In this document: one piece after another, positions 802-50,611 of the stretch | Numbering within the stretch: position 1 is the first letter of the stretch | Layout of the letters: every line of letters begins with the position of its first letter | NCBI GenBank assembly: GCA_047495785.1 | Contig: JBLDXI010000029.1 | Span: forward strand, 3,844,001-3,908,000 | Origin: Lepidodermella squamata | Taxonomy: Eukaryota; Animalia; Gastrotricha | Direction: 5' to 3' | DNA: 64,000 nt | The notes under the pieces: model-generated | What the model was told of the DNA's origin: nothing | The model's database searches: none | What the model saw: the letters and a program-made list of their open reading frames with translations, nothing else | Program-made: the position numbers and the translations under genes

Positions 802-3800
802 ATGCTATCGAGCATTATTCTGGTGAGATGTTTTGAAAAAGCAATTCATATTTGTTTTGTATATCGGCTCTGAAAAAACAGATGTTTTCTCTTGCATCGA
901 GCGCAATTGGGCAACCCATGGGGAAAAGTAAGTCTCACGAGGTAGTGGAGAGTTTCTTTTTAGAAATGTCTTTTTGATTATTAATGGATTAATTGATAGA
1001 TTGCACGGATGCCTCGGTGCAATGCCCACAGCATCAAAGATGCGAATCCTTCTCGACTTTTGTAAGAAACACTGTGGAACCACTACATCGTTGAGTTTCA
1101 GCACGCGCGCTAATTGGTCAACGGTATTTGCATTTCGGCCAGTATGCGACTTTCAGGGGGGATGTGGGATCATCTCCCCCAGCTCAGCCGGGCCAGACAG
1201 CAAAATCAGAATTTATCCCACTGTTTTGTTAATTTTGGAAGGTTCTGGGGCGTGTTTTAGTGGAAAATTTCCAAAACTTTCTCGCTTCGCTCGGTTATTA
1301 GCCGAAATGACTCGTCGGCGTGCACGACCAAATAATTTTTTCCATCCCAGGGAGCTCGGGGATCGAAGATCGCACCCTGATTTTGGTCGCGCATTCGACC
1401 AATATGTTTAATGAGAAAATGACATTTCCAAACCACTTGCATAGTTTCAAATGACTACGGCAGTATGTTCGCAAACTCAGTTAAGTACCGGCAATTTTGG
1501 CGGCAGAAAATGTCCCTAACACTCTCGTCGTCTTAATCCAGCCGCACTGCCGGCTTATTTGTACATGTCATCGGCCAAATCAACTGATGTTCTTTGTAAA
1601 CATTGTCTCCTAATCAAGATTTCGACGAGAAAATTCAAAATTAATACCTATTTCCAATTTTCTACGGTGAATGATGCAGAACATTTCGCCGCATTGCGTT
1701 TGAAAGGAGCTAGGAGCTACTCAATCTTTATTATTCATAAGACATTCATCATGAACATATAACATAGTGGCTTCTTTCAAACGCAATGCGACGATTTTAT
1801 GAGACTACCCAAAAGGCACAATTGCAGTCTTGGAACCAGAATCAACTAATTCTAGACAATTGAAAACTGGTGACAATTGAGGGGAGTCATAGAAACGACC
1901 CATTGACCAATCAGCGTGGACTTTCTAGTGGTTTCTTAATGAAGGCTATGCAAAATGCCTGCTTTTCTAATTTACTGCTTATCTAGGATCCACCATGCAA
2001 GTCGAAAGCTTGCGTTTGTGAAGACTGCGCTAAGCGAGCAGATGAAATGGATATCTGTTTTCCGGGTACGTTTTTCCCATGGCATCGGAAAAAAATAACC
2101 TTTTCTTTTATCTTAGTCACTTACGTCAACTTCTTGAGCGACTCATGCGCCCCTAGAGATGTAGTAACCATACCCGGCGCGTCCTGTTTTTCCAAATCGA
2201 ACAAAATCAAGTGCCACCTTGGCAACCAGGGAAATGGCTGCGCCGCTCGGACACGATGCGGCAATGGAGCTTATGGTTATTGCGGTGGTTACAGCCGCGA
2301 ATGCGTGCAAGATTGGTGCGTTTGCGTGGTGGAGAACGAGGTTTTCGACTACAACACCGGCGGCTGTGTCGCTCGTCAAATCGGCGATTTATGCTCGAAG
2401 GATTCTGAATGCGCTATTACGCGCCAATATGGCAAGAAGAACTACTTGGTCTGCCGCAGTGGCAAATGCGCTTGCGATACGGAGCTTTCTGTTGAAACTG
2501 AGTACCGTGATTACAATTCTGAGTGGAATACCTACGATGTCAAGCGGGCTTGTCTGCACAAGAATGCCACGATTAACCTAAAACAGGGCGAGAAGTGCGA
2601 CCTTCCTGAGAACAGCCGGCCCCGGATGTGGATGGACTTCAGATGGCAATTTAACTGGGATGACGGCACGGTTCACGTTTGCGAAAAATCACTGATTTGC
2701 TTCGCTTGTATGGAAGATGGCAGTGTGGGGTTGTGCCGTGAGTTTTGAGGTGGCTTTTCAATGTGAATTCGACCCTGGGTGGTTTATTTACCTTTTTAAT
2801 ATGTTTCTGCTTTTTTGACCATAATTTTTAACCGGATTTCTACTTTTATAACCGCCCGAGTAACAGTGCTTTTACCGGCGAGGGGGAGGGGGCTCCGGCT
2901 GCATTTGAAAACCACCAGTTTGAAGGACGACGTGGCGTCAATGCGGCAAATTTAATAGATTTTCAATAATCATATTATTATAGACGCTGCTTGGTGGGTA
3001 AAACGAAGTTAGGCAGCTATCAAAGTCTGTCTTGGATGCTGCGTTACTGCTAAGATACATGCTGGGATGTCCACTTATTAACAGGCGTTGGTTATTTGGT
3101 TGTTAAATCATAAACAAATACCCGGGGAAAAAATTGAAAACCACCCTGTGAAAGCTGCAGTAAATACCGTGAACAGCTCTGATTTCTCCGCACTAGGCAA
3201 GTTTAATGGACCCATCGGAAAGACGGCTGATCAATGCGGGCGTAAACAATTCGTCTATTCCGGTCCGAAGCCCTCAGAAAGTGCTCCATTCAAGAGCCTT
3301 TCGAGGCAACGCCTGATCACAAGTGAGAACACAGTGATGCACTGTATAGTTTCGTTAATAAATTTATTTATTAATAGATTGCACCGATGCCTCGGTGAAA
3401 TGCCCACAAAATCAAAGATGCGAAGCCTTCTCCACTTTTGTAAGGAATTTCTTTGATTCGCCAATTACCTGCTTCTCTGTTTACAACCCTAAATAATCTA
3501 GGACCCACCATGCACGTCGAAAGCTTGCGTTTGTAACGACTGCGCCCTGCGACCATTGGAATATGGCGATGAATGTGTTCCAAGTATGTTTTTTTCTATA
3601 TAAAACCGTACAATGTTTCTTTTCTTCACCATGCAGCTACCTACATCAACTCCTTAAACTCTACCTGCACATCAACCCCTTGCGAGGTTGTAACCATACC
3701 CGGCTCGGCCTGTCATTCACCATCGAACAAAACCCAGTGCCTTAATGGCACACAGGGCAATGGTTGTAATACTGTGGCAAGATGCTCATCTAACGAAGAT

Positions 3801-4549
3801 TGTTTTGGCAGCGACCGCATTTGCGAGCAAGGTTGGTGCGTTTGCAAGTTGAAGTACCAAGTTTTCGACTACAACACCGGCAGGTGCGTCGAACCTCAAA
3901 TCGGCGATTCGTGTTCAAATAACACCGACTGTACTATTTCGTCCGATATTAAGAACTTTTTGGTCTGCCGCAGTGGCGAATGCGTCTGTGATACGAAGTA
4001 TTCTGTTGAAACCGAGTACCGTGAATACAATCAGGAGTGGAATAGCTTCGACGTCAAGCGTGCCTGTATTAGTGAGGAGTCCACTTTTAACCTGAAACAG
4101 GGCGAGAAGTGCGACGTTCTCGTAAACAGCCGGAAGTGGAACTTGAAGTGGAGACCGGAGTGGACTTTTAATAGGTACTTGCGGCCCTGGGAAGACAGCA
4201 AGATTCGGGTTTGCGAAAAATCACTGATTTGCTTCGCTTGCATAGAAGATGGCGACGGGGGACTGTGCCGTGAGTTTTGAGGTGGCTTTTTAATTCGAAT
4301 ATGACCTTACCATTAATAATAGGCAAGTTCAATGGAACCATTGGAAAGTCGGCTGAACAATGCGGGCGTAAAGAATTCGTCTATTCTGGCCCGAAGATGT
4401 TAGAAAGCGCTCCGACTAGATCCGTTGCCAGGCAACGCCAACTGACAAGTAAGCACAACGATACAATTGCCGGAAAGAACGACGTGACTTCGGCTGTGCC
4501 CTCAGCCACTATCCTGGCTGCTGTCCTGCTCGTCGTTTCAGCTTCATAG
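802..4549 (+). CDS. Gene A: two-module Cys-rich (EB-module-like) GPI-anchored surface protein, 10 exons
   Basis: Exons 802-822, 882-927, 1000-1061, 1987-2065, 2117-2737, 3197-3322, 3378-3439, 3502-3583, 3637-4269, 4323-4549 join in frame through GT-AG introns. Signal peptide MLSSIILMFSLASSAIG, two ~30-Cys modules with C-x5-C-xn-C-x4-C-x-C EB-like repeats, and a hydrophobic C-terminus SAVPSATILAAVLLVVSAS*. Confidence 0.85.
1140..1379. mobile_element. hAT-like MITE (TIR CAGGGTGCGA-type) in intron 3 of gene A
   Basis: Absent at the paralogous site in gene B. Ends are CAGTATGCGA / TCGCACCCTG with a degenerate 8-bp TSD ATTTCGGC/ATTTTGGT. Related copies at ~35242-35459 (inverted) and ~32180-32665. 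Confidence 0.7.
1687..1793. mobile_element. 107-bp foldback MITE with a 4-bp ATTT target duplication (Sola-like)
   Basis: TIRs CGCCGCATTGCGTTTGAAAGGAGC / GCTTCTTTCAAACGCAATGCGACG. The empty site ACATTTTATGAG is present in gene B. Confidence 0.7.
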
Positions 4550-5380
4550 TAACTGAATTGATCGCTCCGGCTGATTTATCTGAGGCAGACTGATGATGAC
4601 GAACCTTTCGAAACGCTAAAATAAATTTGGTAGTCCTAATCTGTAAATCGTAGCCAAACTTTAAATTGTCACTTACGCACCCAACAAATCGTGTAAAGTG
4701 TAAACACAAATGTGAAGCTGTAGCTAGATGCCAGATGTAGTAATTGGCAAGCCGAAACAATAAAATTGCCCCTCTATCCAACGCTATTATGAAGAGCGAG
4801 AATTTGACCATTTTTGACGATCTGATGTCCTCGCAATCAAATAAAGTCTCAGATCTACCACCTTTCCCCGTCTTCCGCCGCGTAAACCACGACTGTCATG
4901 ACCACCACCACGAGTAACACCAGGCGCCCCACGACCGCCGATAGCCAAGCCGCTAATCCCCGGACTAGGAACAACTTAAGCTCGCCTGCCACCACGGCCA
5001 CCGGGGCCTTGACCGGAGCTGTCGCCGGTAGTTTTCATCATTTCTTTCTTCATCCTCATCGTCCTCGCTCGGCTTGGCACGAGTTGGTTTTTTCGACCGC
5101 TTGGATTACTGTTCTTCAACAGTCACGAGGTGATCGGTCCCCTGGGCTCCATTCGGCTGCGTTTCTAGTTTTACTGCGTTTTACCGCAAGTGCTTTTACG
5201 GTAAAACTAACGCCGCACAAGCATTACGGTGACCTTGTTTGCTTGCTGCGGTAAAATAATTACCGTAAAATGGGGAGTTTTACCGAATCGCTAGTGAACC
5301 CATCATTTCCCACACCATATTGAATATTATAATATCTAAAAATACTGCAGAACTGCAGAAGTCGATGTTATTGTATATAT

Positions 5381-5568
5381 CGTTAGCGTCGTTGAATAAC
5401 TCGAATTTAGGCTTGTTTACATTCTTTTCAAGGCGAAAATTGACAAGTAAAAGTCTTTTGTTTTTTTGTCTCTTCATTCATGTTGAAAAAGCCGCTTTTT
5501 ACATGACACTTTTCACCATGAAACGGATGTAAACAAGCCTAAATCCGAGTTATTCAACGACGCTAACG
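5381..5568. mobile_element. ~190-bp MITE with ~40-bp TIRs, copy 1
   Basis: CGTTAGCGTCGTTGAATAACTCGAATTTAGGCTTGTTTACAT and its reverse complement, flanked by ATAT on both sides. Absent downstream of gene B. Confidence 0.8.
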
Positions 5569-6127
5569 ATATATTGCTCATCAGTGTGCGAAGTAGGATC
5601 CGGGAGCTGAGGTGTTTTCTACTTGTTTTCTAGGACACAGCTGAAGAAACCAAAGGTTCCCACCCTGTGGATTTCCAGCTTCCAGCCTTCCTCTGGTTGG
5701 AGTCTCTGGTTGGAGAGTGCTTTCGTTCCTTACAGATGAAGAAAGAGCTGCCGTTGCTACGCAAGCCGAAGTTAACAGCAGCCTCATTCTCGATCGGCGA
5801 GAAGCCAAGAATATTATTAGTTCATCAACATTGTTCAGCAACAGTGTACCTGGAAACACTCAATTTTCCCTATTCACCTTTCGAATCGTTCAAAATTTTC
5901 CACTGCACCATGAAAATTTTCAGCAATTTCCTGATGTAACCCAAGCCTATTCGTTGGTGTTCTGATGAAATGGCTCGTCTCCTGAAATATGCCGTCGTAA
6001 ACAGCTATTATGATTCGTTTGATGTTGGGGGAATTCATTTTGTTACATGTCGTATGTTGGAGTTCATTCATTAAAAAATTACTTTCTCTTTTACTTTGGC
6101 CTGGTATTTTAATAGTAATCCTCTCAA

Positions 6128-6898
6128 CCCTTTCACGGCTGGAAGGACGATTTCGGAATTTTGACTTTGAAAATTCGCAGAAAATTGAATTTGATGAATT
6201 CTTGATCGCCTTTTTGAGGAATATTGCTTTTCGATGTTGGTTACAAGGTTTTGAGACCAGGGCACCGTTATCTTGCATGGTCAGGACATACTAGCAATTT
6301 GAAAATAATCAACCTGAGATTGGAATTTCGATTTTTTTCAACTTGAAATTTCATAGATTTCTGAGTATTCTTTCATCCGACAACAAATACCACCGTGTCC
6401 GCCAGAGTCTCATTGACCTCTGTGTAAATTGTTTCGAGTTGGAAATAAAAAATGACGACGCTATTGAACTTTAATCAGACCGGCCGGCCTATCCGCCAGG
6501 AATTATACAGGCGGAGTGCGTGATTTTTGAGCTGCAAAAACTGTCGCGAACAAAAACTAGAAAAGCTGAATTCGGATCTGAATGCTGAGCCTCTGAAACT
6601 TTTTTAAACTGACCGTTTTCGGCGATTCAAGTGAGGGAGAATCTTATGGACATTCATGGGAGTAATTTATATCTAAAATTCCAAAACTGAAGACACCTGA
6701 CACAGAAATTAGGGTGCTCGAAAAATCGCCTGAAATTAGCTCGGCGGATAGGACGAATTCGGCCACTTTTTGTGCAGCCTTAACGGTGATAGATAAAGAC
6801 AAACGGCTATCAAAATCGTTATCAAGGCCTTCGAAAACGCCTAAAACTACTGTCAGATATTTTTTCTCCCGCAGATAAATAATTCCGCCATGAAAGGG
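6128..6898. mobile_element. Non-autonomous piggyBac-like element
   Basis: TIRs CCCTTTCACGGC / GCCATGAAAGGG, flanked by TCAA/TTAA. The paralogous empty site CCTCTTAAAATG is at ~14190. A partial inverted relative lies at ~25850-26097. Confidence 0.75.
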
Positions 6899-8591
6899 TT
6901 AAATGGCTAATGTTCCCGTTTCGTAAAATACAGTTTGGAACTCTACATGAAGCCATGAAATCAGAAGAAAAATCATCGCTAAATCGTAAATTATCGATGT
7001 GATTTCTCAGCAATTATGAAAATAAGCTACCCGCTCAAAAATCGCCGGTCAAACCTGCGAAAAGTGCTACGCAGATATTCAAAATTGTTCAGTTTTCAAG
7101 TTTCAAAGTCTAACTAAAAATGCAGCCTATTACGCGCATTCCGGCGCGATTATATGCAATGTTACGATCATGACCTCGTTCTGGCAGAATATTATTGATT
7201 GGTGTGAAAACTAATTTATGAATGGCGGCGCCCGTATGTCTGCTGAGGAGGCGAGTTTTCGCCTCATCGCATATTGCATTATCGCGGCGCGGCCAGTTGT
7301 GTTTTTATGAACATATCAATTTTTGACAGGAAAGTCTGCATTGGCAAGGGAGTGCGCTACCGAAGGCCTTTTTCCATGTAACACCCAGAAAAAAAACGTT
7401 CGTTCCAATTTATGATTCTCTTTAGTTAACTTTCTGCAGAATACCGTGCACCAACTGCAAAAAATCCCTGTTGTTATGCGGAAAATCCTTCTTGTTATGC
7501 AAGATTAAGCTATTACATTGCTCAATATAGAATTGTCCTAAAAAATTGCTGTGCCAATTCGATATTTTACGATATAATATTCGTAGATCGTCGATACCTG
7601 AAATCGCCGTACTTGATTTGAAACAACTCGTCTTCGACTCGTTCCATTCGTTCAGATATGAACTCTTTACTCATGTTATAGCAGACAAAAATGGAAGGCA
7701 CATACAACGCACATAACGTTTTCATACAGAAAACTTACTGATTGCTCGCATCTCATGCGAAATATTGGACAATATGGGTAAGGCTTCTGCTGCCCGAGAA
7801 AAAGTTACGCCGCTCGCAAATGTATGAATTACTACGCGGCTGCGCTGATGCATGGGTTTTTCCCTTCCTTCCACTTTCAGAGTTTCCCATACTTCTTCAC
7901 TATCACTAAAGTGGCTGGCTTTCTCCTAGTTCCTGAAACTAAATAGTAAAAAATAATGATTGCTGAAAGACGACACACTATACCTTCCATGAACCCGTGC
8001 AGGTTGTCTGTAAACATTTTTTAACTTTAGAGCGTAGTTTGCGCTCAAAATACGAGCGCATCATTTTGTGACCATTATGCATATTAGGCTATTCATCTTT
8101 TCATAATGAATTATTCCCCTAAAGCTTGGTATTTGAAGAACAGTGGGTCACGACTTGAATTGAAATGACATGTGGGGTCACGGAACAAAATTTGCATCAA
8201 GAACCACCGGGCTATTCCTTCGATAATTCGCTTTTTTCTTAAGTATCGGAATCAAGATTAGCTTAGGAAAGTCGCCAGGCTGCCCAAATTATGTTGATCA
8301 GTTCAAACACTCTGCCACTCTGTATATTCCTATTTCCTTTATCGCTATTAGCTTCTTTCTTGTAATATTTCGTCGCATGAGACATTTTCTATAGCTCGTT
8401 CCGATTCTTTTACGCCGAGTTCTGCTAACACGCCGAAGATTTACAGGGCGTGTCTATTATAGTGGTAATAATCTATGCTACCAATAATCATTGTATTAGT
8501 AGCCCGAGTTCAAAGACTTTAAAGAAATCGACATCTGACAAACTGACTGGGAAGCATTCTGCAGTACTCTTCCATTGAGCTTACAAGGAGC

Positions 8592-11500
8592 ATGCTATCG
8601 AGCATTATTCTGGTGACATGTTTCTTTGAAAAAGCAATTCATATATTTGTTTTATATTTCCTCTCTGGAAAACAGATGTTGTGTCTTGCATCGAGCGCTA
8701 ACGGGCAACCCTTGTGGAAAAGTAAGTCTCACGACTTCGTGGAGAGTTTCTTTTTGGAAATGTCTTTTGGATTATTAATGGATTAATTGTTAGATTGCAC
8801 GGATGCCTCGGTGCAATGCCCAAAGTATCAAAGATGCGAATCCTTCTCGACTTTTGTAAGAAACATTATGAAACCACTACATCGTTGAGTTTCAGCACGC
8901 GCGCTAATTGGTCAGCGGTCTTTGCATTTCGGCCGCGCATTCGACCAACATGTTTAATAACAAAATGACATTGCCAAACCACTTGCATATAGTTTCCAAT
9001 GACTACGGCTGCAGATTCGCAAACTTAGTTAACTATAACGGCAATTTTGGCGGCAGGAAATGTCCCTAACACTCTCGTCGTCTAAATCCAGCCGCCCTGC
9101 CGGCATATTTGTACATGTCATTGGCCAAATCAACTGATTTTCTTTGTAAAAATTGTCTCCTAATCAAGATTTCGACGAGAGAATTCAAAATTAATACCTA
9201 TTTCCAATTTACCACGGTGGATGATGCAGTACATTTTATGAGACTACCCAAAAGGCACAATTGCACTGCCTTGGCACCAGCCTCAAAAAATTCCAGAAAG
9301 CGGGAAAGACAAAGTGGAAAACTCGTGACAATCTCATTCAAGGAGTAGAAAATCGCCAAAATTTGCAAGATAGTCCATCGATCGGATTTTCGAAAGCCGC
9401 ATTTCAACCATCATTTTACCAAAAAAATTGAGCGGAGTCATAGAAACGACCCATTGACCAATAAGCGTGGACTTTCAAGTGGTTTCATAGTGAAGGCTAT
9501 GTCTATTTGACTTTTCAAATCTAGGATCCACCGTGCAAGTCGAAAGCTTGCGTTTGTGAAGACTGCGCTAAGCGAAACGACGCACTGGATATCTGTTTTC
9601 CGGGTACGTTTTTCCCATGGCATCGGAAAAATAACCATTTCTTTTATCTCAGTCACTTACGTCAACTCCGTAAACGACTCTTGCGTCCCTGGCGTAGTCG
9701 TAACTGTACCAGGCGCGTCGTGTTATTCCGAATCGAACAAAATCCAGTGCCACCTTGGCAATCAGGGAAATGGCTGTGCCGCTCAGACACGATGCGGCAA
9801 TGGAACTGATGGTTTTTGCGGTGGTTACGACCGCGAATGCGTGCAAGATTGGTGCGTTTGCGTGGAGGAGAACGAGGTTTTCGACTACAACTACGGCAGC
9901 TGTCGTGCACGTGAAATCGGCGATTTATGCTCGAAGGATTCTGAATGCGCTATTAAGCGCGAATATGGCAAGAAAAACTACTTGGTCTGCCGCAGTGGAA
10001 GATGCGCGTGCGATACGGAGGTTGCTGTTGAAGCCGAGTACCGTGAATACAATTCGGTGTGGAATACCTACGATGTCAAGCGGGCTTGCTTGCACAAGAA
10101 TGCCACGATTAACCTAAAACAGGGCGAGGAGTGCGACTTTTTTGATAACAGCCGGCACTGGATGTGGATGGACACTGGATGGCAATGGAAATGGGAAGAC
10201 GGGACGGTTAGCATTTGCGAAAAATCGCTGATTTGCTTCGCTTGTATGGAAGATGGCAACGTGGGCTTGTGCCGTGAGTTTTGCGGTGGCTTTTCAATGC
10301 GACTTTGACCCTGGGTGTTTTATTTACTTTCTTTTATTTTTCTGATGTTTTAACCATAAGTTTTAACCGGGTGTCTACTTTTATGACCGCCTGTGTAACA
10401 GTGCCTTAATCGGGGTGGGAAGGGGGCTATGGCTACATTTGAGAGCCAATAATGCTTTCAAGGACGACTATGGCGCGGTGCTGTGCGTCAGTGCAGCAAA
10501 TTTATTAGATTTTTCATAGATAAGGGTTAACCTTTATCTAGGAGATTTTTAAATATGAAAATATTAGAGACGCTGCTTAGTGGGTAAAACAACGTTTGGC
10601 GGCTTCTGGCAAGCAAAGTCTGCCTTGGATGGTGCGTTACTGCTAAGGTACATGCTGGGATTTCCACTTATTAACAGGCGTTGGCTATGGTTGTTAAATC
10701 ATAAATGAATACTGGGGAAAAAACAAATGAGAGCCACCCTGTAAAACTGCAGTAAACACTGTGCAGAAAACACTCTGATTTATCCGCACTAGGCAAGTTC
10801 AATGGACCCATCGGAAAGTCGGCTGAACAATGCGGGCGAAAGAAATTCGTCTATTCTGGCCCGAATCCCTTAGAAAGTGCTCCATTCAAGAGCCTTTCCA
10901 GGCAACGCCTGATCAAAAGTGAGCGCACAACAATGCACTGTATAGTATCGTTAACAAAATGTTCCATTATTTAATAGATTGCACAGATGCCTCGGTGAAA
11001 TGCCCACAAAATCAAAGATGCGAAGCCTTCACCATTTTTGTATGCGGGCATTCGCTTTGCAAATTACCTGCTTTTCTATTTACAAACCTGAATGTAGGAC
11101 CCACCATGCACGTCGAAAGCTTGTGTTTGTAACGACTGCGCTCTGCGACCATTGGAATACGGTGATGAATGTCGCCCAAGTGCGTTTTTTTCTTTATAAA
11201 ACCGTAGAATGCTTATTTTTTCACCGTGCAGCTACCTACATTAACTCCTTAAACTCTACCTGCACATCCACCCCTGGCGAGGTTGTAACCATACCCGGCG
11301 CGGCCTGTCATTTACCGTCGAACAAAACCCGGTGCCTTAATGGCACACAGGGCAATGGTTGTAATACTGTGGCAAGATGCTCATCTAACAAAGATTGTTT
11401 TGGCAACGACCGCATTTGCGAGCAGGGTTGGTGCGTTTGCAAGTTGAAGTACCAGGCTTTCGACTACAACACCGGCAGGTGCGTCGAACCTCAAATCGGC

Positions 11501-12446
11501 GATCCGTGTTCAAATGACACCGACTGCTCTATTTCAGACTATCTTTGGAATTACATGGTCTGCCGCAGTGGAGAATGCGTCTGTGAGAAGTATTCTGTTG
11601 AAACCGAGTTCCTTGAATACAATCTCGAGTGGAATAGCTTCGAGGTCAAACGGGCTTGTATTAGTCCGAAGTCCACTCTTAACCTGAAACAGGGCGAGAA
11701 GTGCGACGTATTGTTAAACGGCCAGAAGTGGAACCTCAATTGGAGACCGGAATGGATTTTCAGCAATCACTGGTGGCGCTGGGAAAAAAGCAAGATTCGG
11801 CTATGCGAGAAATCACTGATTTGCTTCGCTTGCATAGAAGATGGCGACACGGGATTGTGCCGTGAGTTTTGAGCATAGAGAACGTAGTGGTCAGAGTGTG
11901 CACTCACGCTCTTTCTCTCGAATCAAAAACCTTTTTGTGTGCGCGCATTCTTTTTTAAATTATTGTACATGGTAATTTTGTGTATTTTAACATTTTTGCG
12001 CGGAAATCGGCCTTCACGTATTTCCTTGAAATAACACCTTTCAAATAATTCGATCCTGCTTTTTCACGTGGCAATGGTTGCAGGGATATTCGAAAAGTTC
12101 GGAGGAGTTTTCATTTATTTTTTGTTTCAGTGTCGCATCGTGAGCGCGAACTCAGATCACTTCGCTCTCTATGGTTCTGAGGTAGCTCTTTAATGTGAAT
12201 TCGACCGTACCATTAATAGGCAAGTTCAATGGAACCATTGGAAAGTCGGCTGACCAATGCGGGCGTGAAGACTTCGTCTATTCTGGCCCGAAGATGTTAG
12301 AAAGCGGTCCGACTAGATCCGTTGCCAGGCAACGCCAACTGACAAGTAAGCACAACGATACCATTGCCGGAAAGAACGGCGTGACTTCGGCTGTGCCCTC
12401 AGCCACAATCCTGACGGCTGTCCTGCTCGTCGTTTCAGCTTTATAG
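8592..12446 (+). CDS. Gene B: two-module Cys-rich GPI-anchored surface protein, paralog of A
   Basis: Same 10-exon layout and phases as A (ATG 8592, hybrid linker exon 10793-10918, stop 12446). No in-frame stops were seen in the exons. Confidence 0.85.
11874..12173. mobile_element. 300-bp MITE with an 8-bp TSD (P- or hAT-like) in the last intron of gene B
   Basis: ~35-bp imperfect TIRs starting CATAGAG and TSD GTTTTGAG/GTTCTGAG. The empty site is present in gene A. Confidence 0.8.
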
Positions 12447-15400: not shown

Positions 15401-16822
15401 AAAGTAATTCATATATTTGTTTTATATTTCCTCTCTGAAAAACAGATGTTGTCCCTTGCATCGAGCGCAATTGGGCAACCCATGGGGATAAGTAAGCCTC
15501 ACGAGGGATGTAGTTTATTTTTGGATATGTCTTTTGGATTTTTTGATGGATTAATATTTACTTATATTAATATTAATTGTTAGATTGCACGGATGCCTCG
15601 GTGCAATGCCCACAGTATCAAAGATGCGAATCATTTTCAACTTTTGTAAGAAACATTGTGGAACTATAAAATTGTTGAGCTTCAGCAAGCGCGCTGATTG
15701 GTCAACGGTCGTTACATTTTGGCCATGCAATCGACTAATGAATTAATTGAAAAATGGCATCGCCAAATTAATTGCATGGTATCCAATGACTAGACCCCGC
15801 ATGATAATCTTGGCTAAACTGCAGCAAAACAAAAACTTGTAGCAACATTTAATGGATCGCACGACCGACATGTTTCATGCCAGTCATTGAAACGACCGAT
15901 TGACTAATCAGCGTGTGCCAGAGAAATGGAATTGGTTCCATAATGAAGGCTATGCAAAATGCCTGCTTTTCTACTTGAGACTTATCAAATCTAGGACCCA
16001 CCGTGCAAGTCGAAAGCTTGCGTTTGTGAGGACTGTACTAAGCGAAAAGGTTTCCCTCACTCATTTGACAGGTGTCGTCCGGGTACGTTTTTCCCACGCC
16101 CCACAGCATCGGAAAAATAACCATTTCTTTTATCTCAGTCACTTACATCAATTCCTTAGACGACTCCTGCATCCCCGATAGTCCTGATGCTGTTCTAACC
16201 GTTACAGTACCCAACGCGGACTGTAATGAACAGAACAAACCCGAGTGCATCTTCGACAGGCAAGGAAATGGCTGCGACGCTGGGACACGATGCGGCAATG
16301 GAACTGATGGTTTTTGCGATGGTTACAACCGCGAGTGCATGCAAGATTGGTGCGTTTGCGTGGAGGAGAACGAGGTTTTCGACTACAACTACGGCGGTTG
16401 CGGTGCACGTCTCATCGGCGATCAGTGTAGAAAGTAGGGGGGGGGGGGGGGACGGTGGGTATCATCCTGGTCTCGGCGATGCTTCATCCCGACCTGGCAA
16501 GGGACGACAGCTCATCCCCGGGGGGATGAGGTTATATCCTGGTCTCCAGCCTAAACTGCACTGGGGACGATACTGGTAGCGGGGTGAAGTTAGCGCAATC
16601 TGACGCCAAAATTTGAAATTTACGCGCAAAAGCCCTTTCAACTGTAAATCGCGAGATTGTAAAAATATAATTAAGAATATCTAAATTATATATGACATCC
16701 AGCACAATAATGGAATTATAAAAGAAGCGAGGTATAGACTTTTTACGCAAGGTGAGGTGAGGCAGACCTTAAAGCGGCAGACCTGAGCCGTTCTCGTCCA
16801 CTTTCATAGATATGCAAGAGTG

Positions 16823-17295
16823 TAGAGCAAATCTGGCGATAGATGGCGTAAATCTAAAGTCATATTCTGATTCCCAGACCCTCTTTTAGTAAAGATGTTA
16901 TATTTTCTTTCAGATCTAGATGATTTGCCACCTATGAGTCAATTTTTTCGATTTTTCACTTTGGACCATCTGAAAAATGTCATTCTGAAGGGTCTAGAGC
17001 AAATCTGGCGATAGATGGCGTAAATCTAAAGTCATATTCTGATTCCCAGACCCTCTTTTAGTAAAGATGTTATATTTTCTTTCAGATCTAGATGATTTGC
17101 CACCTTTGAGTCAATTTTTTCGATTTTTCACTTTGGACCATCTGAAAAATGTCATTCTGAAGGGTCTAGAGCAAATCTGGCGATAGATGGCGTAAATCTA
17201 AAGTCATATTCTGATTCCCAGACCCTCTTTTAGTAAAGATGTTATATTTTCTTTCAGATCTAGATGATTTGCCACCTTTGAGTCAATTTTTTCGA
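16823..17295. repeat. 172-bp tandem repeat, ~2.7 near-identical copies, inside the hAT element
   Basis: TAGAGCAAATCTGGCGATAGATGG recurs at 16823, 16995 and 17167. Confidence 0.95.
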
Positions 17296-17304
17296 ATTTT
17301 TTCG

Positions 17305-18220
17305 AAGAAGAATGACAAGGTTGACCGCCTCAAGAAGATCGTGAACTCATTGACGGACTTCACCTTTCTCGCTCAGCTGGCGTTCATTCATGATGCCTTA
17401 CGAGAGATGACCTGGTTATCCTTGACCCTTCAGAGGTCCGAATCGTCGCCCCTGGACGTTTGGCCTCATATAAGGCGAACTATTGAGCACCTCGACAACA
17501 TGGGCGTGTCTGACGGTGTGAGCGTGTCAAATCTCATGAGCTCCTACGCCGAAAAACAGCTGAACGGCATTCCTCTTCGAAACTGCACTGATGCCGCCCT
17601 TGCAGCGTTTTCAGCAACAAAGTTGAAGCTATCCAGCAAGATGGCTGAAAGCCTGCGCGAACGTGTCTCGACATCGCAGAAATTTCTGGAAGCAGCTTCA
17701 GCCCTCGTCCCGCTTAACTGGCCGCCACGATCAAGTGTCAAGTTCCTCAAGTTCGGCGAGTTCGAAGTCGAAACTCTGGCAAATTCTTTTGGCCTTGATT
17801 GGTGGGCGGTGACGAAGGATCTACGCGATTGGAAAGAAGGTCGCGAACCCCTGCAATCGTCAGCGCTTGGTCAGCTCATGATAAAGTTGAAGACAGTCGC
17901 CGTCACTTCGTCTGACTGTGAGCGTGGATTTTCTGAAATGAACCGCACTCAATCAGACGATCGCAATAGGCTTTACGTTGTTACCATGTCCTGTAAGTTT
18001 CAATTTGATGATTCGTAAATACTGGAATTAAAATCTTCGATTTATAGCTCTGATGTTCGTGTGTATTAATGGGCCTGCGATTCACAACTTCGACCCAACT
18101 CAATTCGTGCGCTCATGGCTACAGAAGGGTCGTCGCAGTGCCCGTGATCAAGCCCGTCTTCCGGCTATAATCGACTCGCCGGTGGAGAAAATCAGGTCCA
18201 CCATTTTTATACGAAAATAA
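17305..18220 (+). pseudogene. hAT transposase C-terminal fragment (hATC dimerisation domain, ZNF862/KIAA1586-like)
   Basis: Motifs LSLTLQ, VTSSDCERGFSEMNRTQSDDRNRL and, after intron 17993-18047, LMFVCINGP. The N-terminus is missing. Confidence 0.85.
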
Positions 18221-18327: not shown

Positions 18328-18893
18328 ATGCTTTGAGAAATATAGGAAGAATGTGAATAGATGATGCGAGCGAACGCGTAGCGTTCGCGAGCGAAATTTT
18401 TTGACCAAAATACTCTATCCCCCCCTCAGGAAAATTCCTACTTTCTACGCTGTCGGCGATTCATGCTCAAAGGATTCGGAATGCGCTGTTATGCCCCAAT
18501 ATGGCAAGAAGAACTACTTGGTCTGCCGCAGTGGCAAATGCGCCTGCGATATCGAGGTTTCTGTTGAAACTGAGTACCGTGAATACAATGAAGAGCGGAA
18601 CAGCTTCGATGTCAAACGTGCTTGTTTGCATAAGAATGCCACGATTAACCTAAAACAGGGCGAGGAGTGTGACCTTCCCGAGAACAGCCGGGAATGGAGA
18701 TGGATGGGCGGCAAATGGCAATGGAACTGGCAAGAAGGCACGGTTCGCGTTTGCGAGAAATCACTTATTTGCCTCGCTTGCATCGAAGATGGCGACGTAG
18801 GCTTGTGCCGTGAGTTTTGAGGTTGCTTTTCTAAGTCTATTTAACCCTGGGTGGTTTATTTACTTTTTTATGTTTTTGCTGCGTTGGTTATAT

Positions 18894-42086: not shown

Positions 42087-43337
42087 ATGAAAGGGGTTCT
42101 GGTAAGAATTATTGATGTAATTTCTTATTTCCAGTAATCGTAATTTTTTCATCGATAAAGATTGTTCTTACCATTATTGCAGCCCTGGGCGAAGCTCATA
42201 TAAGGCTAAGAGATAGTAAGGCCCATTACGTTTTACCCTACAAGCTTTCCTAGCTGTGTTTGCTTGCTAGACTGCACTGACACTCCCTGCCCGAAACACG
42301 AGAGATGCAATGTCTTCAGATTCGTAAGTCCACTATGGAAAGGTATCAATTGATTGAAAATTTGCCTTCAGTTAACAGGATCCACCCTGCGAATCCAAGT
42401 TTTGCTCATGCGATGATTGCTCAATGCCCGAAATTGACGGCTCATGTTACCCAGGTTGGAAAATCTGAATTAACTTCCTCCTAATTTCAACATTTTTCGA
42501 AAATCAGTAAAATATATCAATGAGCTGAATGAGCCGTGTGAACCGAATAAGAAAGGTCAGGAAATCACGATGCCCTCGGCCTACTGTAACTCGGAGCTAA
42601 ACAAAACTGATTGTATCATGGCGAAATTTGGCAACGGATGCGGAACGTTAGGTGCAAAAACTACCTGTATCGAAGACCACGAATGCCTAGGCAAATGCAA
42701 ATATGGCCGATGCGTATGCGAGCTGCCTAACAGGTACATCGATCTAAACTTGGACCGATGCGTGCCTCGTAAAGTAAGATAATTTTTCTGATTTTTCCTG
42801 ATGATTTCAGGGGATTTTTCATGGATTTAGAGAGGTGATGTCTGTAGGAACAGCGCTGAATGTGCGAGCAGGCGTGATCCGAAAAAATACCCATTTGAGG
42901 AAACAAATTACATGATTTGCGTCAACGGCAAATGCGATTGTGACGCTGTAAGAGGGCAACTGGCGTTCCACACCATTTTCGACGAGGACCTCAACGAATT
43001 TGTTGATATTGAGAGATGCGTGGCTCTTACGGCGACTGTCAACCTAACTAAGGGCGAGCCGTGCTCTTTTGAAGATTTCGACGATAAGAATGCGCAGATA
43101 TGCGAGCAAGGCCTTATATGTCAGGGCTGTCTCGGGAATGACTACGAGACCACTTACCTTTGCCGTAATGCTACTTTCAATGGAAAAACGGCGAAACAGT
43201 GTGGTCGGAAGACTTATGTATTTTCTTCGGCACCATCTACTGCAAAGACATTTTCGCTAATTTTTGAATTCCTAGTGCTATATTCTATCTTCAAAATCAG
43301 AAAGATTGAACACAATCCGATGATGCAGCTTAAATAA
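42087..43337 (+). CDS. Gene I: highly divergent outlying member of the Cys-rich family
   Basis: MKGVL|IVLTIIAALGEAH..|NCTDTPCPKHERC..|DPPCESKFCSC..|..FGNGC..CVPRK|RGDVC..ICEQGLICQGC..KTAKQCGRKTYVFS. The Cys scaffold is conserved, with one extra intron and the final intron absent. Confidence 0.75.
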
Positions 43338-43742: not shown

Positions 43743-44406
43743 ATGTCAACTACATCCTCTAGCACAACTGGGGCCTACGAATATCTGCAATATGGGACAG
43801 GTATCTTCTTCTTCTTGCCTTATGTCTCGATTGAATAATTCCTGATTTCTTTTCGCAGTCGATAACCCAATTTTATGGACCTTGGTTGTGGTATCAGTTT
43901 TACTGCTTGTCACTCTTCTTGTCACTTTATGGTGCTGCCTACGCCCGAAACCAGCCGGGCCACCCCTAGCCGTTCACTACAACGACCTAGCCCCTTACCC
44001 TAGAGCAATTATTTCGAACCCGAACGACGTAGCGAGTTACGCCTATAAAGGACCTCAAGTCAGTCACTACTACCCCCAACCAAATCCGATGGAACAAGCA
44101 CCGGGTGTCCCACCTGCAGTGAGAGCCATGGAAGAACCGTATCCTTACACAGTAAGAGTCCCGCCACCATCCCAACCGCCGAGTCGATACCCTAGAAGGG
44201 GAGATCCTGTGGAGTACGAGCGGGATTTCTACAATGAAGAGGCGTACGACCCGCCGCCAGGTCGCAGGTCTAGATTCTACGACAGGGATATCACGCCTCG
44301 TAATGCTAAGAAAGACCTCAGACGGCCGACGCGGCAGATTTTCGACGAATATCTCACCAAATACAAGAAACAAAAACGCGGCTATGATTTTGGTGGAAAA
44401 TACTGA
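43743..44406 (+). CDS. Small single-pass membrane protein with a Pro/Tyr-rich tail
   Basis: Exons 43743-43800 and 43859-44406. Short N-terminus, TM ILWTLVVVSVLLLVTLLVTLW, then CCLRPKP. AATAAA follows the stop. Confidence 0.8.
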
Positions 44407-46163: not shown

Positions 46164-47492
46164 ATGAGATCAATTCTTGTTTCCGCCGCTTTCTTAGTCG
46201 CTTCACTGCTACACGCTAATGCAGCTGTTGAGGATTGGGTAGCTGATGGAGGTGACTACAGCCATACTGGCTACAAGCCGTACTCACTGGGTTACGTAAA
46301 CAAAATCGACGTCCTTTGGAAAACGCAGCTAGAAACTACTCGCAAAGGCCTGAATGGAATTTACGTTTACAACCAGAAGTTGTACATTAACACTGGCGAT
46401 GGAAGTTTAGCAATTCTCGACGCAAAAACTGGCAAACTGATCAAAAAGTTCAACATCTTCACGGATCTCTCAGCCTCGAGGCAGGTGATTGAGCCGCTGA
46501 ACAAACTGATGTTTCTGGCAGAGGGCAACGGACTGGTTTTCGCTATTAGCCTTGAGGACGGGAAGGAGAAGCTTCTATGGTCACGAAAACTGGCTGGTGA
46601 TATCTACGACATTATCCCAGTTACTGGGTTGAAAGACCTTGTTGTTGGGTTTTCAACAGACGAGAATAATGGCCAGCTTGTGGCCCTAGACTTCCAAACT
46701 GGGGAGACGAGATCTTCATATGGAGTCAATTCCATGGATATTCCCTATTACCTATCTCTCTCAAATGACAATCGACTTATCAGTTTGACGATGAGCACTA
46801 CAACCGAAGCTATCGCCGAGTTTGATGCGACGAAGAATGGTAACAAATTATGGAATGTTGAATTCCCGCTAGATAACGCCGACTTAAATCATGGGCCTAT
46901 GATTTCTGGCAACCTCGCAATACATAGGAAAGGGTCTGAAATGGTTTCTGTTGACATCGACACGAAATCGATGAAATGGGTCGCATCCAGTGGCAGTCCG
47001 TATTGCGACCATTTCTTAATCGCTGTTACGGACAACGATTTCATCTACAGGAAATGTCAGTTGGGCGAACATCGCATGATGTTTAAGCATGACATTAAAA
47101 CCGGTGCTTTGGAGACTTCGTACCCGGTGCCGCTTTCCGATGCGCCGCCTGCTTGCAACCCTATTGTTCTCGACGATTACGTGATCGCACAGGGTTACTC
47201 AGGGTTCGCGATTTACGATAAGAACGACGGCAGCCTGGCTGCGAATATCACAGTTGGTGACAGCTCGTTTTCCTTTGGTTACAAATGGGCATTTTCGGCT
47301 GGAGTGTTCTACGCGCAGGGTTCTGATGGGTATGTCTATGCGTTTGGTACGAGCTATGTGGGTACAACGCCATCTACCAAGTCGCCCCCGAAGACAACTC
47401 AACCGAATACAACCCCAAATAGCGCAGGAGTGCAGCTAATTAGTTATGTAGCATTCATTATCAATATTTCATTTTTCGTGCTTTTTCGTTGA
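46164..47492 (+). CDS. Intronless PQQ-binding-like/BamB-like beta-propeller protein with GPI-type tail, copy 1
   Basis: Signal peptide, DWVADGGDYSHTGY, repeated LD.KTG..W blades, terminal GSDGYVYAF, T/P-rich stalk and hydrophobic C-terminus. Confidence 0.85.
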   Translation: MRSILVSAAFLVASLLHANAAVEDWVADGGDYSHTGYKPYSLGYVNKIDVLWKTQLETTRKGLNGIYVYNQKLYINTGDGSLAILDAKTGKLIKKFNIFTDLSASRQVIEPLNKLMFLAEGNGLVFAISLEDGKEKLLWSRKLAGDIYDIIPVTGLKDLVVGFSTDENNGQLVALDFQTGETRSSYGVNSMDIPYYLSLSNDNRLISLTMSTTTEAIAEFDATKNGNKLWNVEFPLDNADLNHGPMISGNLAIHRKGSEMVSVDIDTKSMKWVASSGSPYCDHFLIAVTDNDFIYRKCQLGEHRMMFKHDIKTGALETSYPVPLSDAPPACNPIVLDDYVIAQGYSGFAIYDKNDGSLAANITVGDSSFSFGYKWAFSAGVFYAQGSDGYVYAFGTSYVGTTPSTKSPPKTTQPNTTPNSAGVQLISYVAFIINISFFVLFR

Positions 47493-49285: not shown

Positions 49286-50611
49286 ATGAGATCAATTCTT
49301 GTTTCCGCCATTTTCTTAGTAGCTTCACTGCTACAGGCTAATGCATCTGTAGATGATTGGGTAGCTGATGGAGGTGATTACGCCCACACTGGTTACAAGC
49401 CGTACTCACTGGGTAACGTCAACAAAATCGATATCCTTTGGAAATACCAACTAGAATCTACTCGCAAAAGCATGAATGGAATTCTTGTCTACAACCAGAA
49501 ATTGTACGTTTACACTGACGACGGCGATTTGGCAATAATCGATGCTAAAAAAGGCGCTCTCGTCAAGCAGTTCAACGTTAAGGCAAATTGGACAGTACTC
49601 TATCAGGTGATTGAGCCCGAAAATCAACTCATGTTCCTCGCAGACTTGGATGGGCAAGTTGTCGCAATCAGCCTCGAGGCTGGAAAGGAGGCAGTCATTT
49701 GGTCTCAAAAACTACCGGGTCGTATTCACGACATAATCCCAGTTACAGGGCTGAAAGATCTAGTCATTGCTAGTACCATCGATGGTAAAAACGGTGAGTT
49801 GATCGCACTGGACTTCCAAACAGGGCTGCAGCGATCTTCTTTTGGGGTCGCTTCACTGGACATTCCTTATTACCTATCCCTCTCGAATGATAATCGATTG
49901 ATCGGATTGACAATGAGCACTACAACCGAAGCTGTCGCCGAGTTTGATGCGACTAAAAGTGGGAACAAATTGTGGAATGTCGACTTCCCATTACTAAGCG
50001 CCGTCCTCAATCATGGGCCTATGATTTCTGGTAATGTCGCAATCACTAGGCAAAATTCCGAAATGGCTGCTGTTGATATCGACAGCAGAACTGTGAACTG
50101 GACAGCATCGCCTTGCAGCGACGATTTTTTGACAGCTGTTACGGACAACAAATTCGTCTACCGGAAATGTAAACCGGTCGAACATGTCTCTATAGCCAAG
50201 CATGACATAAAAACTGGGGATTTGGTTATTATTTTCAGGGTACCACTTTCTGATGCGCCCCCTGCTTGTGACCCTATTGTTCTGGACGATTACATTATCG
50301 CGCAGGGTTATACCGGGTTTGCGATTTACGATAAAAATGATGGCAGTTTGGCTGCCAATATCGCAGTTGGCGATGGCTCGTTTACTTTTGGTAACAAATG
50401 GGCATTTTCGGCTGGAGTGTTCTACGCGCAGGGTTCTGATGGATATGTCTATGCGTTTGGTACGAGCTATGAGGCTACAACGCCACCTCCAAATACGACT
50501 CCGAAGACAACTCAACCGAATACGACTCCAAATGGGGCAAACGGACAGCTGATTAGTTATGTAGCATTATTTATTAATATTTCAATTGGCTTGCTATTCG
50601 TTGGACATTAA
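49286..50611 (+). CDS. Intronless PQQ-binding-like beta-propeller protein, copy 2
   Basis: Colinear paralog of 46164-47492 with an intact 441-aa ORF and shared promoter and 3' flank. Confidence 0.85.
   Translation: MRSILVSAIFLVASLLQANASVDDWVADGGDYAHTGYKPYSLGNVNKIDILWKYQLESTRKSMNGILVYNQKLYVYTDDGDLAIIDAKKGALVKQFNVKANWTVLYQVIEPENQLMFLADLDGQVVAISLEAGKEAVIWSQKLPGRIHDIIPVTGLKDLVIASTIDGKNGELIALDFQTGLQRSSFGVASLDIPYYLSLSNDNRLIGLTMSTTTEAVAEFDATKSGNKLWNVDFPLLSAVLNHGPMISGNVAITRQNSEMAAVDIDSRTVNWTASPCSDDFLTAVTDNKFVYRKCKPVEHVSIAKHDIKTGDLVIIFRVPLSDAPPACDPIVLDDYIIAQGYTGFAIYDKNDGSLAANIAVGDGSFTFGNKWAFSAGVFYAQGSDGYVYAFGTSYEATTPPPNTTPKTTQPNTTPNGANGQLISYVALFINISIGLLFVGH

Follow-up and report, generated by a model that had tools for sequence, protein, structure and literature searches.

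Results

Genes A, B, and C lie in a tandem array of Cys-rich modules

The 64-kb stretch of Lepidodermella squamata DNA analysed here (the window) carries an array of genes encoding related Cys-rich modules. Using the B1 module as a tblastn query, we located 12 modules, all on the + strand, between 2.1 and 43 kb of the window. Each module occupies one large phase 1-1 exon that begins after an AG acceptor and is followed by a GTGAGT donor; a small Cys-rich exon lies 5' of it and an exon starting (R)KFNG lies 3' of it. After A2, B2, C2, D, E, F, and H, the (R)KFNG exon encodes a hydrophobic tail and then terminates with a stop codon. After A1, B1, and C1, it leads via two small exons to a second module. 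Only weak matches to this exon were detected after G and after the interrupted module I. Genes A, B, and C, each with ten exons and two modules, stand in tandem array with single-module paralogues (Table 1). The phase 1-1 exons had suggested one giant multi-module gene or a set of mutually exclusive cassette exons. We rejected this reading because of the terminal exons with tail and stop and the open ten-exon models of A and B.

The models of genes A and B are open throughout, and all of their junctions are AG/GT. Inspection of both products revealed a signal-like MLSSIIL... start and a GPI-like tail. In gene B, the N-terminus reads MLSSIILMLCLASSANG/Q, and a 15-residue C-terminal stretch with a mean hydropathy of 2.3 precedes the stop. 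Judged from sequence, the products of A, B, and C are probably secreted, GPI-anchored, Cys-rich EB-module surface proteins. Contigs of RNA-type run X2 contain the GT..AG joints 10918>10978 and 11039>11098 of gene B, and in the same run the module-2 donor is joined at 12220. These splice joints support the gene B model. An RNA-type contig also joins 9603 to 9653, bringing the mini-exon onto the module-1 exon (loose end 9652). RNA-type contigs cover the B1 motif only thinly, with a depth of 3.4 in bin 10000-10199 that drops to 0 in the bin after it.

Other features of the array were noted in passing. The short introns of gene B (8613-8675, 8722-8793, 9604-9652, 10919-10977, 11040-11097, and 11180-11231) measure 49-72 nt and are canonical GT..AG introns, and the intron 5' of the module's mini-exon is 46-49 nt long in D and H and 669 nt long in B. 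The twelfth module (42507-43133) is divergent, with 30% identity to B1 and with mid-module stops or an extra intron. The ORF after it (43882-44406) starts with a transmembrane-like segment and has a Pro-rich tail, which makes a membrane-spanning rather than a GPI-type protein possible for this member. The window further contains two paralogous ORFs without introns, at 46164-47492 (442 aa) and 49286-50611 (441 aa); both begin with a signal-like segment and end in a hydrophobic tail rich in Thr and Pro. For the 442-aa beta-propeller ORF, no homologue was recovered at E <= 1e-10 in a word-indexed search.

Table 1. Positions of genes, exons, Trp-rich loops, and the transposon in the window.
Feature	Position	Strand	Description and basis
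Gene A	802-4549	+	Ten-exon plan identical to gene B, intact ORF of 652 aa; gene model
A1 12-mer PRMWMDFRWQFN	2620-2655	+	Degenerate copy in an intact gene; translation
A2 loop	4113-4208		Counterpart of B2 loop
Gene B	8592-12446	+	10 exons, 651 aa, two modules; assembled gene model
Gene B exons 1-5	8592-8612, 8676-8721, 8794-8855, 9525-9603, 9653-10273	+	Gene model
Gene B exons 6-10	10793-10918, 10978-11039, 11098-11179, 11232-11861, 12220-12446	+	Gene model
Gene B module-1 exon	9653-10273	+	621 nt, phase 1-1, AG/GT; EB-type Cys-rich module with Trp loop
B1 12-mer HWMWMDTGWQWK	10156-10191	+	Full W-x-W-x4-W-x-W spacing; translation
B1 13-residue Trp-rich insert HWMWMDTGWQWKW	10156-10194	+	Residues 238-250 of the predicted 651-aa gene B protein
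B2 loop	11705-11800	+	Other Trp-rich insertion, 19 residues (KWNLNWRPEW...HWWRW); alignment
Gene C module-1 exon, 5' piece	16139-16422	+	Stops at transposon
hAT-type transposon in exon C1	16423-18452	.	2030 bp; terminal inverted repeats and target site duplication
Gene C module-1 exon, 3' piece	18453-18809	+	Contains C1 motif; other frame than 5' piece
C1 12-mer EWRWMGGKWQWN	18692-18727	+	G-G-K turn, full W-x-W-x4-W-x-W spacing; within 18453-18809, the 3' piece of the exon split by the transposon; translation
C2 loop	20103-20198		Counterpart of B2 loop

The host module resembles EB below the Pfam cut-off

In Pfam, the modules of the window match EB (PF01683) at 19-21.5 bits, below the gathering cut-off of 24.3, and B1 has no EB hit. 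EB is detected at E <= 0.01 in 34 of 46 aligned family modules (best 2.7e-10). A word-indexed homologue search with the B1 module was empty, and relatives were recovered only by an exhaustive profile search of 1.84 billion representative proteins. That search yielded 35 relatives (best E 4.9e-27), all of them unnamed ORFs of ENA metagenome assemblies, and found no further insert-bearing copies among the proteins covered. The contig of one relative carries PDZ, CUT, and WD40 genes, which indicates that it is metazoan. Foldseek neighbours of the module (AlphaFold-DB) and its Atlas neighbours are EB or EGF-like proteins. Together with the family matches, these neighbours suggest a likeness to the EB and EGF-like Cys-rich extracellular proteins of invertebrates, from which the window modules differ in their sub-threshold scores and in having the Trp loop C-terminal to the EB part.

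Neither the module nor a 32-mer spanning the C1 motif had a significant PDB match by sequence or fold, in libraries for which trpzip peptides are themselves too short; fold matches of the 32-mer model were generic three-strand meanders (E > 2). The whole ~230-aa module belongs to no named family and has no solved relative by sequence or fold.

A related metazoan ENA metagenome contig (L001) holds two tandem family members of 498 and 445 aa at 3950-7588. Both have two or three modules in an uninterrupted ORF and lack Trp inserts, indicating that a multi-module architecture arose there too, minus the inserts.

Module 1 carries a Trp-rich insertion with tryptophan zipper spacing

In our alignments, a 13-residue Trp-rich insertion is private to the first module of A, B, and C (type-1 modules). 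It is situated in a loop bounded by the conserved Cys161 and Cys189 of the module. Between these Cys residues, A1, B1, and C1 have 27 residues with 3-5 Trp. The short form of this loop, with 14-19 residues and 0-1 Trp, is found in nearly all of 34 distant modules (one has 8 residues) and in paralogues D-H. None of these 34 distant modules, nor any of the single-module paralogues (D, E, F, G, and H), has the insert. The lineage-specific aromatic loop in module 1 is real.

Tryptophan zipper (trpzip) peptides were designed by Cochran and co-workers (as cited in PMC2705519). Trpzip2, SWTWENGKWTWK, has a type I' turn at residues 6-7 (PMC2705519). The original prediction had placed peptides of this kind in the loops of C1 and B1 and had cited the A1 counterpart, and all three peptides and their positions are exact on translation. 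As it had claimed, the W-x-W-x4-W-x-W spacing of B1 and C1 is identical to that of trpzip2. A1 lacks this spacing, with Arg and Phe replacing Trp at two of the four zipper positions (codons CGG and TTT vs TGG). Six-frame translation of the whole window revealed W.W....W.W in B1 and C1 only. C1 and trpzip2 also have G7-K8 in common, in agreement with the GK turn ascribed to C1; the turn residues are GG in C1, DT in B1, and DF in A1, compared to NG in trpzip2. The tips read MDFR, MDTG, and MGGK across the three paralogues. The proposal of a variable tip holds to the extent that tip residues change between B1 and C1 while the Trp residues are retained. Trpzip2 is a free 12-mer, whereas B1 and C1 are natural sequences embedded in a disulfide-rich module, where a fifth Trp follows the motif.

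A transposon disrupts the C1 exon

The module-1 exon of gene C is split by a hAT-type element. The element has 16-bp terminal inverted repeats (15/16 matching) that start with CAG and is flanked by a perfect 8-bp target duplication, TCGGCGAT, at 16415-16422 and 18453-18460. The insertion in C1 thus has both hallmarks of hAT elements, terminal inverted repeats and an 8-bp target site duplication, and the perfection of the latter suggests that it is recent. The gene C frame meets an in-frame TAG four codons into the element, and the insertion leaves the 3' piece of the exon frame-shifted relative to the 5' piece. The 259-aa ORF of the transposon (17239-18018) had no transposase Pfam hit.

C1, the closest lookalike of trpzip2, belongs to a disrupted exon in this assembly. 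Since the exon has phase 1-1, skipping it would preserve the frame and lose the motif. In the one RNA-type run found, which contains B1 (38% of its words), the C1 3' piece was below threshold. The full motif within an intact, spliced gene is found only in gene B.

Trp enrichment and retention exceed chance

At a generic Trp frequency of 1.2%, the naive chance of the pattern is ~2e-8 per site; this estimate uses the wrong null and overstates the case. When five Trp are placed within a 13-residue insert, trpzip spacing results in 36 of 1287 placements (2.8%). Since B1 and C1 are paralogous, their trpzip spacing represents one evolutionary occurrence with a single origin. What is clearly non-random is the Trp enrichment of the loop relative to other family modules, together with the retention of Trp between B1 and C1. 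At a dS of about 0.42 between these copies, 5/5 Trp are retained vs 2/8 other insert residues (one-sided Fisher p = 0.016). The dS between A1 and B1 is 0.21, and that of either to C1 is 0.32-0.42. Given that A1 and B1 are the closer pair, the five-Trp pattern is ancestral and two zipper Trp were lost in A1, where the ORF is still open.

The loop has a dN/dS of 0.9-1.7, compared to 0.2-0.4 for the remaining exon (Fisher p 0.03-0.04 per pair, the pairs being non-independent). These values suggest relaxed or diversifying change; an excess over 1 is not established.

The DNA of the B1 loop (10156-10182) contains a 9-nt direct repeat, CACTGGATG, with copies 17 nt apart that are translated in two frames (H-W-M and T-G-W). 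TGGATGG also occurs twice. The repeat is missing in C1, so the B1 tip may derive from local templated duplication.

Module-2 inserts follow gene architecture

Module 2 of genes A, B, and C contains another Trp-rich insertion. In the type-2 modules it reads KWNLKWRPEW..., with Trp at i, i+4, and i+8 followed by a variable half. Type-1 and type-2 inserts have only their flanks, NSR.W and W(E/Q)(D/E), in common. Both modules of the two-module genes carry Trp-rich inserts, which no single-module paralogue does. In a tree constructed without the loop, type-2 modules cluster with D, E, and F, which lack the insert (support 93/98), and type-1 modules make up a separate clade. This topology indicates that the inserts track gene architecture rather than module phylogeny. 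The distribution points to within-gene conversion, parallel gain, or repeated loss.

Structure predictions for the Trp loop

The AlphaFold2 model of the B1 module, built from a 46-row alignment, has a mean pLDDT of 81.8 and a pTM of 0.68. Residues 166-178, which include most of the motif, have pLDDT < 50. No strand is assigned from 156 to 186; a strand is present at 187-189, and the block 181-190 recovers to a pLDDT of 80. Low confidence in the insert is expected because 40 of the 46 alignment rows have a gap in this segment, and for the same reason the B1 module model neither confirms nor refutes a hairpin.

A 32-mer from C1 (18665-18760) was modelled by AlphaFold2 from a single sequence. The model contains strands at 11-14 (WRWM), 17-21 (KWQWN), and 27-30, with a turn at G15-G16. 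The best of the five models has a mean pLDDT of 78.2, with 85 in the block of residues 11-20, and the remaining four have means of 61.6-75.2. Mapped onto the 12-mer, the predicted turn falls at residues 6-7 with symmetric strands, which is the topology and register of trpzip2; the model is compatible with W2:W11 and W4:W9 as cross-strand neighbours in C1. The third strand matches strand 187-189 of the B1 module model. The structure-prediction check of the original proposal was accordingly split, with a hairpin in trpzip2 register for the C1 32-mer and an insert of pLDDT < 50 and no secondary structure for B1.

The turn sequences differ in what they are suited to. G-G suits the two-residue type I' turn of the standard hairpin-loop classes. 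Turn statistics make D-T unfavourable for a type I' turn at positions 6-7. M-D-T-G of B1 may better suit a type I turn with a Gly bulge. Such a bulge would pair M173 with W177, so that each Trp would face a non-Trp residue. In contrast, a four-residue B1 loop closed by W172:W177 would preserve the zipper register. Given these different turn preferences, the two paralogues may not have one common register.

AlphaFold2 predicts beta-hairpin peptides well, and its pLDDT ranks models poorly; the benchmark that reports this is silent on false-positive hairpins (bioRxiv 10.1101/2022.02.17.480937). Overall, the models weakly support a hairpin fold of the Trp insert.

Discussion

A proposed hairpin with an aromatic face

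We propose that the insert is a short two-stranded beta-hairpin with an aromatic face that is used as a contact surface, and we assign this reading a probability of roughly 0.4. The 13-residue insertion arose in module 1 in the lineage of the three tandem two-module genes. It would fold back on itself as a two-stranded beta-hairpin, extending the small sheet that ends at strand 187-189. The alternating Trp residues would line one face, and polar and variable residues would form the other face and the tip. We infer the hairpin, together with its register, exposure, and binding role. The hairpin fold is favoured by two considerations: a loop insertion has to bring its ends together, and alternating W-x-W is the pattern of a strand. 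The aromatic face could act as a sticky surface that contacts a partner molecule (glycan, lipid, or protein) or the Trp loop of module 2. A protruding hairpin formed by the Trp loop is plausible. C1, and possibly B1, would adopt the tryptophan zipper register. Even if the hairpin is granted, true trpzip Trp-Trp pairing in C1 is less likely than not, and pairing of this type in B1 is less likely still.

An alternative use for the same residues is packing, in which the inserts of the two modules would contact one another, or the module body, and thereby join the modules. The strict co-occurrence of Trp inserts in both modules of the two-module genes, with none in a single-module paralogue, would be explained by such packing, as would inserts that follow gene architecture instead of the loop-free module tree. 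All type-1 loops conserve the fifth Trp, W181, which has an aligned Trp in 2/3 type-2 loops and is located where model confidence recovers (block 181-190, pLDDT 80), and five exposed Trp would be unusual on a soluble surface. However, identical co-occurrence can result from conversion between modules within a gene, and the fast change of the non-Trp residues is unusual for a packed interface. We regard packing as unlikely, while giving it serious weight.

The insert could instead be an unstructured, tolerated flexible loop, built by slippage or templated duplication of TGG units, with its spacing a (W-x)n coincidence. The low pLDDT (< 50) and lack of secondary structure in the B1 module model would be expected of such a loop, but a low pLDDT is also expected where an insertion is gapped in 40 of 46 alignment rows, and the C1 peptide model is a moderately confident hairpin. 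At the DNA level, B1 contains CACTGGATG read in two frames and TGGATGG twice, the spacing has a 2.8% chance given composition, dN/dS in the loop is near or above 1, A1 is minus two Trp, and C1 tolerated a transposon. Against this, most other insert residues differ between B1 and C1, yet all five single-codon Trp are retained (p = 0.016). On this evidence, a purely flexible loop seems rather unlikely.

The original prediction went further than our hairpin reading, viewing the loop as a self-stabilising hairpin. Insertion into a Cys-bounded loop and the C1 peptide model argue for that part of it, whereas the degenerate A1, the broken C1 exon, and the poor turn of B1 argue against. We consider quite improbable a reading with B1 and C1 as natural trpzips that fold autonomously and act as a rigid, disulfide-free stalk showing a fast-evolving four-residue tip on a GPI-anchored receptor. 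A further reading, in which a self-stabilising hairpin displays a hypervariable tip for immune-type or self/non-self recognition, is very improbable: MDFR, MDTG, and MGGK differ on a conserved Trp frame, loop dN/dS is raised, and the genes lie in a tandem array of surface proteins, but there are only three germline copies, one degenerate and one broken, an excess of loop dN/dS over 1 is not established, zero further insert copies occur among 1.84 billion representative proteins, and there is no sign of somatic or combinatorial diversification.

Comparison with known systems

Ultralong CDR H3 loops and the VLR LRRCT insert belong to somatically diversified repertoires. They are protruding loops with a variable tip on a stable scaffold, as the Trp loop may be, whereas the Trp loop exists as three germline paralogues and lacks a diversification mechanism. 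The analogy drawn to them earlier is weakened in that it rests on these three paralogues. The dN/dS of the loop is raised, with no established excess over 1.

The Trp ladder of the thrombospondin type-1 repeat (TSR) has the form W-x-x-W-x-x-W, a C-mannosylation motif. The TSR is likewise an extracellular Cys-rich metazoan module with a Trp-rich motif on one strand face. Its ladder has W-x-x-W spacing, whereas type-1 loops have W-x-W. Neither W-x-x-W nor W-x-x-C occurs in A1, B1, or C1, and B2 alone has one W-W-R-W. In the 46 aligned family modules, the TSR profile had no match beyond one stray member. We rejected a C-mannosylation or TSR ladder reading on account of the wrong Trp spacing.

The choline-binding repeat of pneumococcal LytA provides a natural beta-hairpin rich in aromatic residues. 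This hairpin folds on its own as a 14-mer, and its aromatic residues contact ligand without Trp-Trp cross-strand stacking (PMC4471590). Its likeness to the Trp loop is that of one natural aromatic-rich beta-hairpin to another, predicted one. In contrast to the Trp loop, it is a bacterial solenoid repeat with other aromatic spacing, and there is no sequence relation. The trpzip literature that we found comprises design, simulation, and materials papers, plus LytA as the one natural aromatic hairpin; in these searches, the coverage of which is incomplete, no natural protein with the exact trpzip motif was found.

Implications

Tryptophan zippers are known as a design product. If the B1 loop does fold as a trpzip, evolution would have reached the same minimal hairpin solution, and a natural scaffold with a variable tip would be available for study. 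As a prediction for one broken copy and one intact copy, the structural claim has the value of a cheap, well-defined peptide experiment and not that of a discovery. The locus itself is a small, datable case of a surface loop gaining an aromatic insertion, one that was gained in two-module genes only, partly via local DNA repeats, and that has since met with decay in one copy (A1) and transposon knockout in another (C1).
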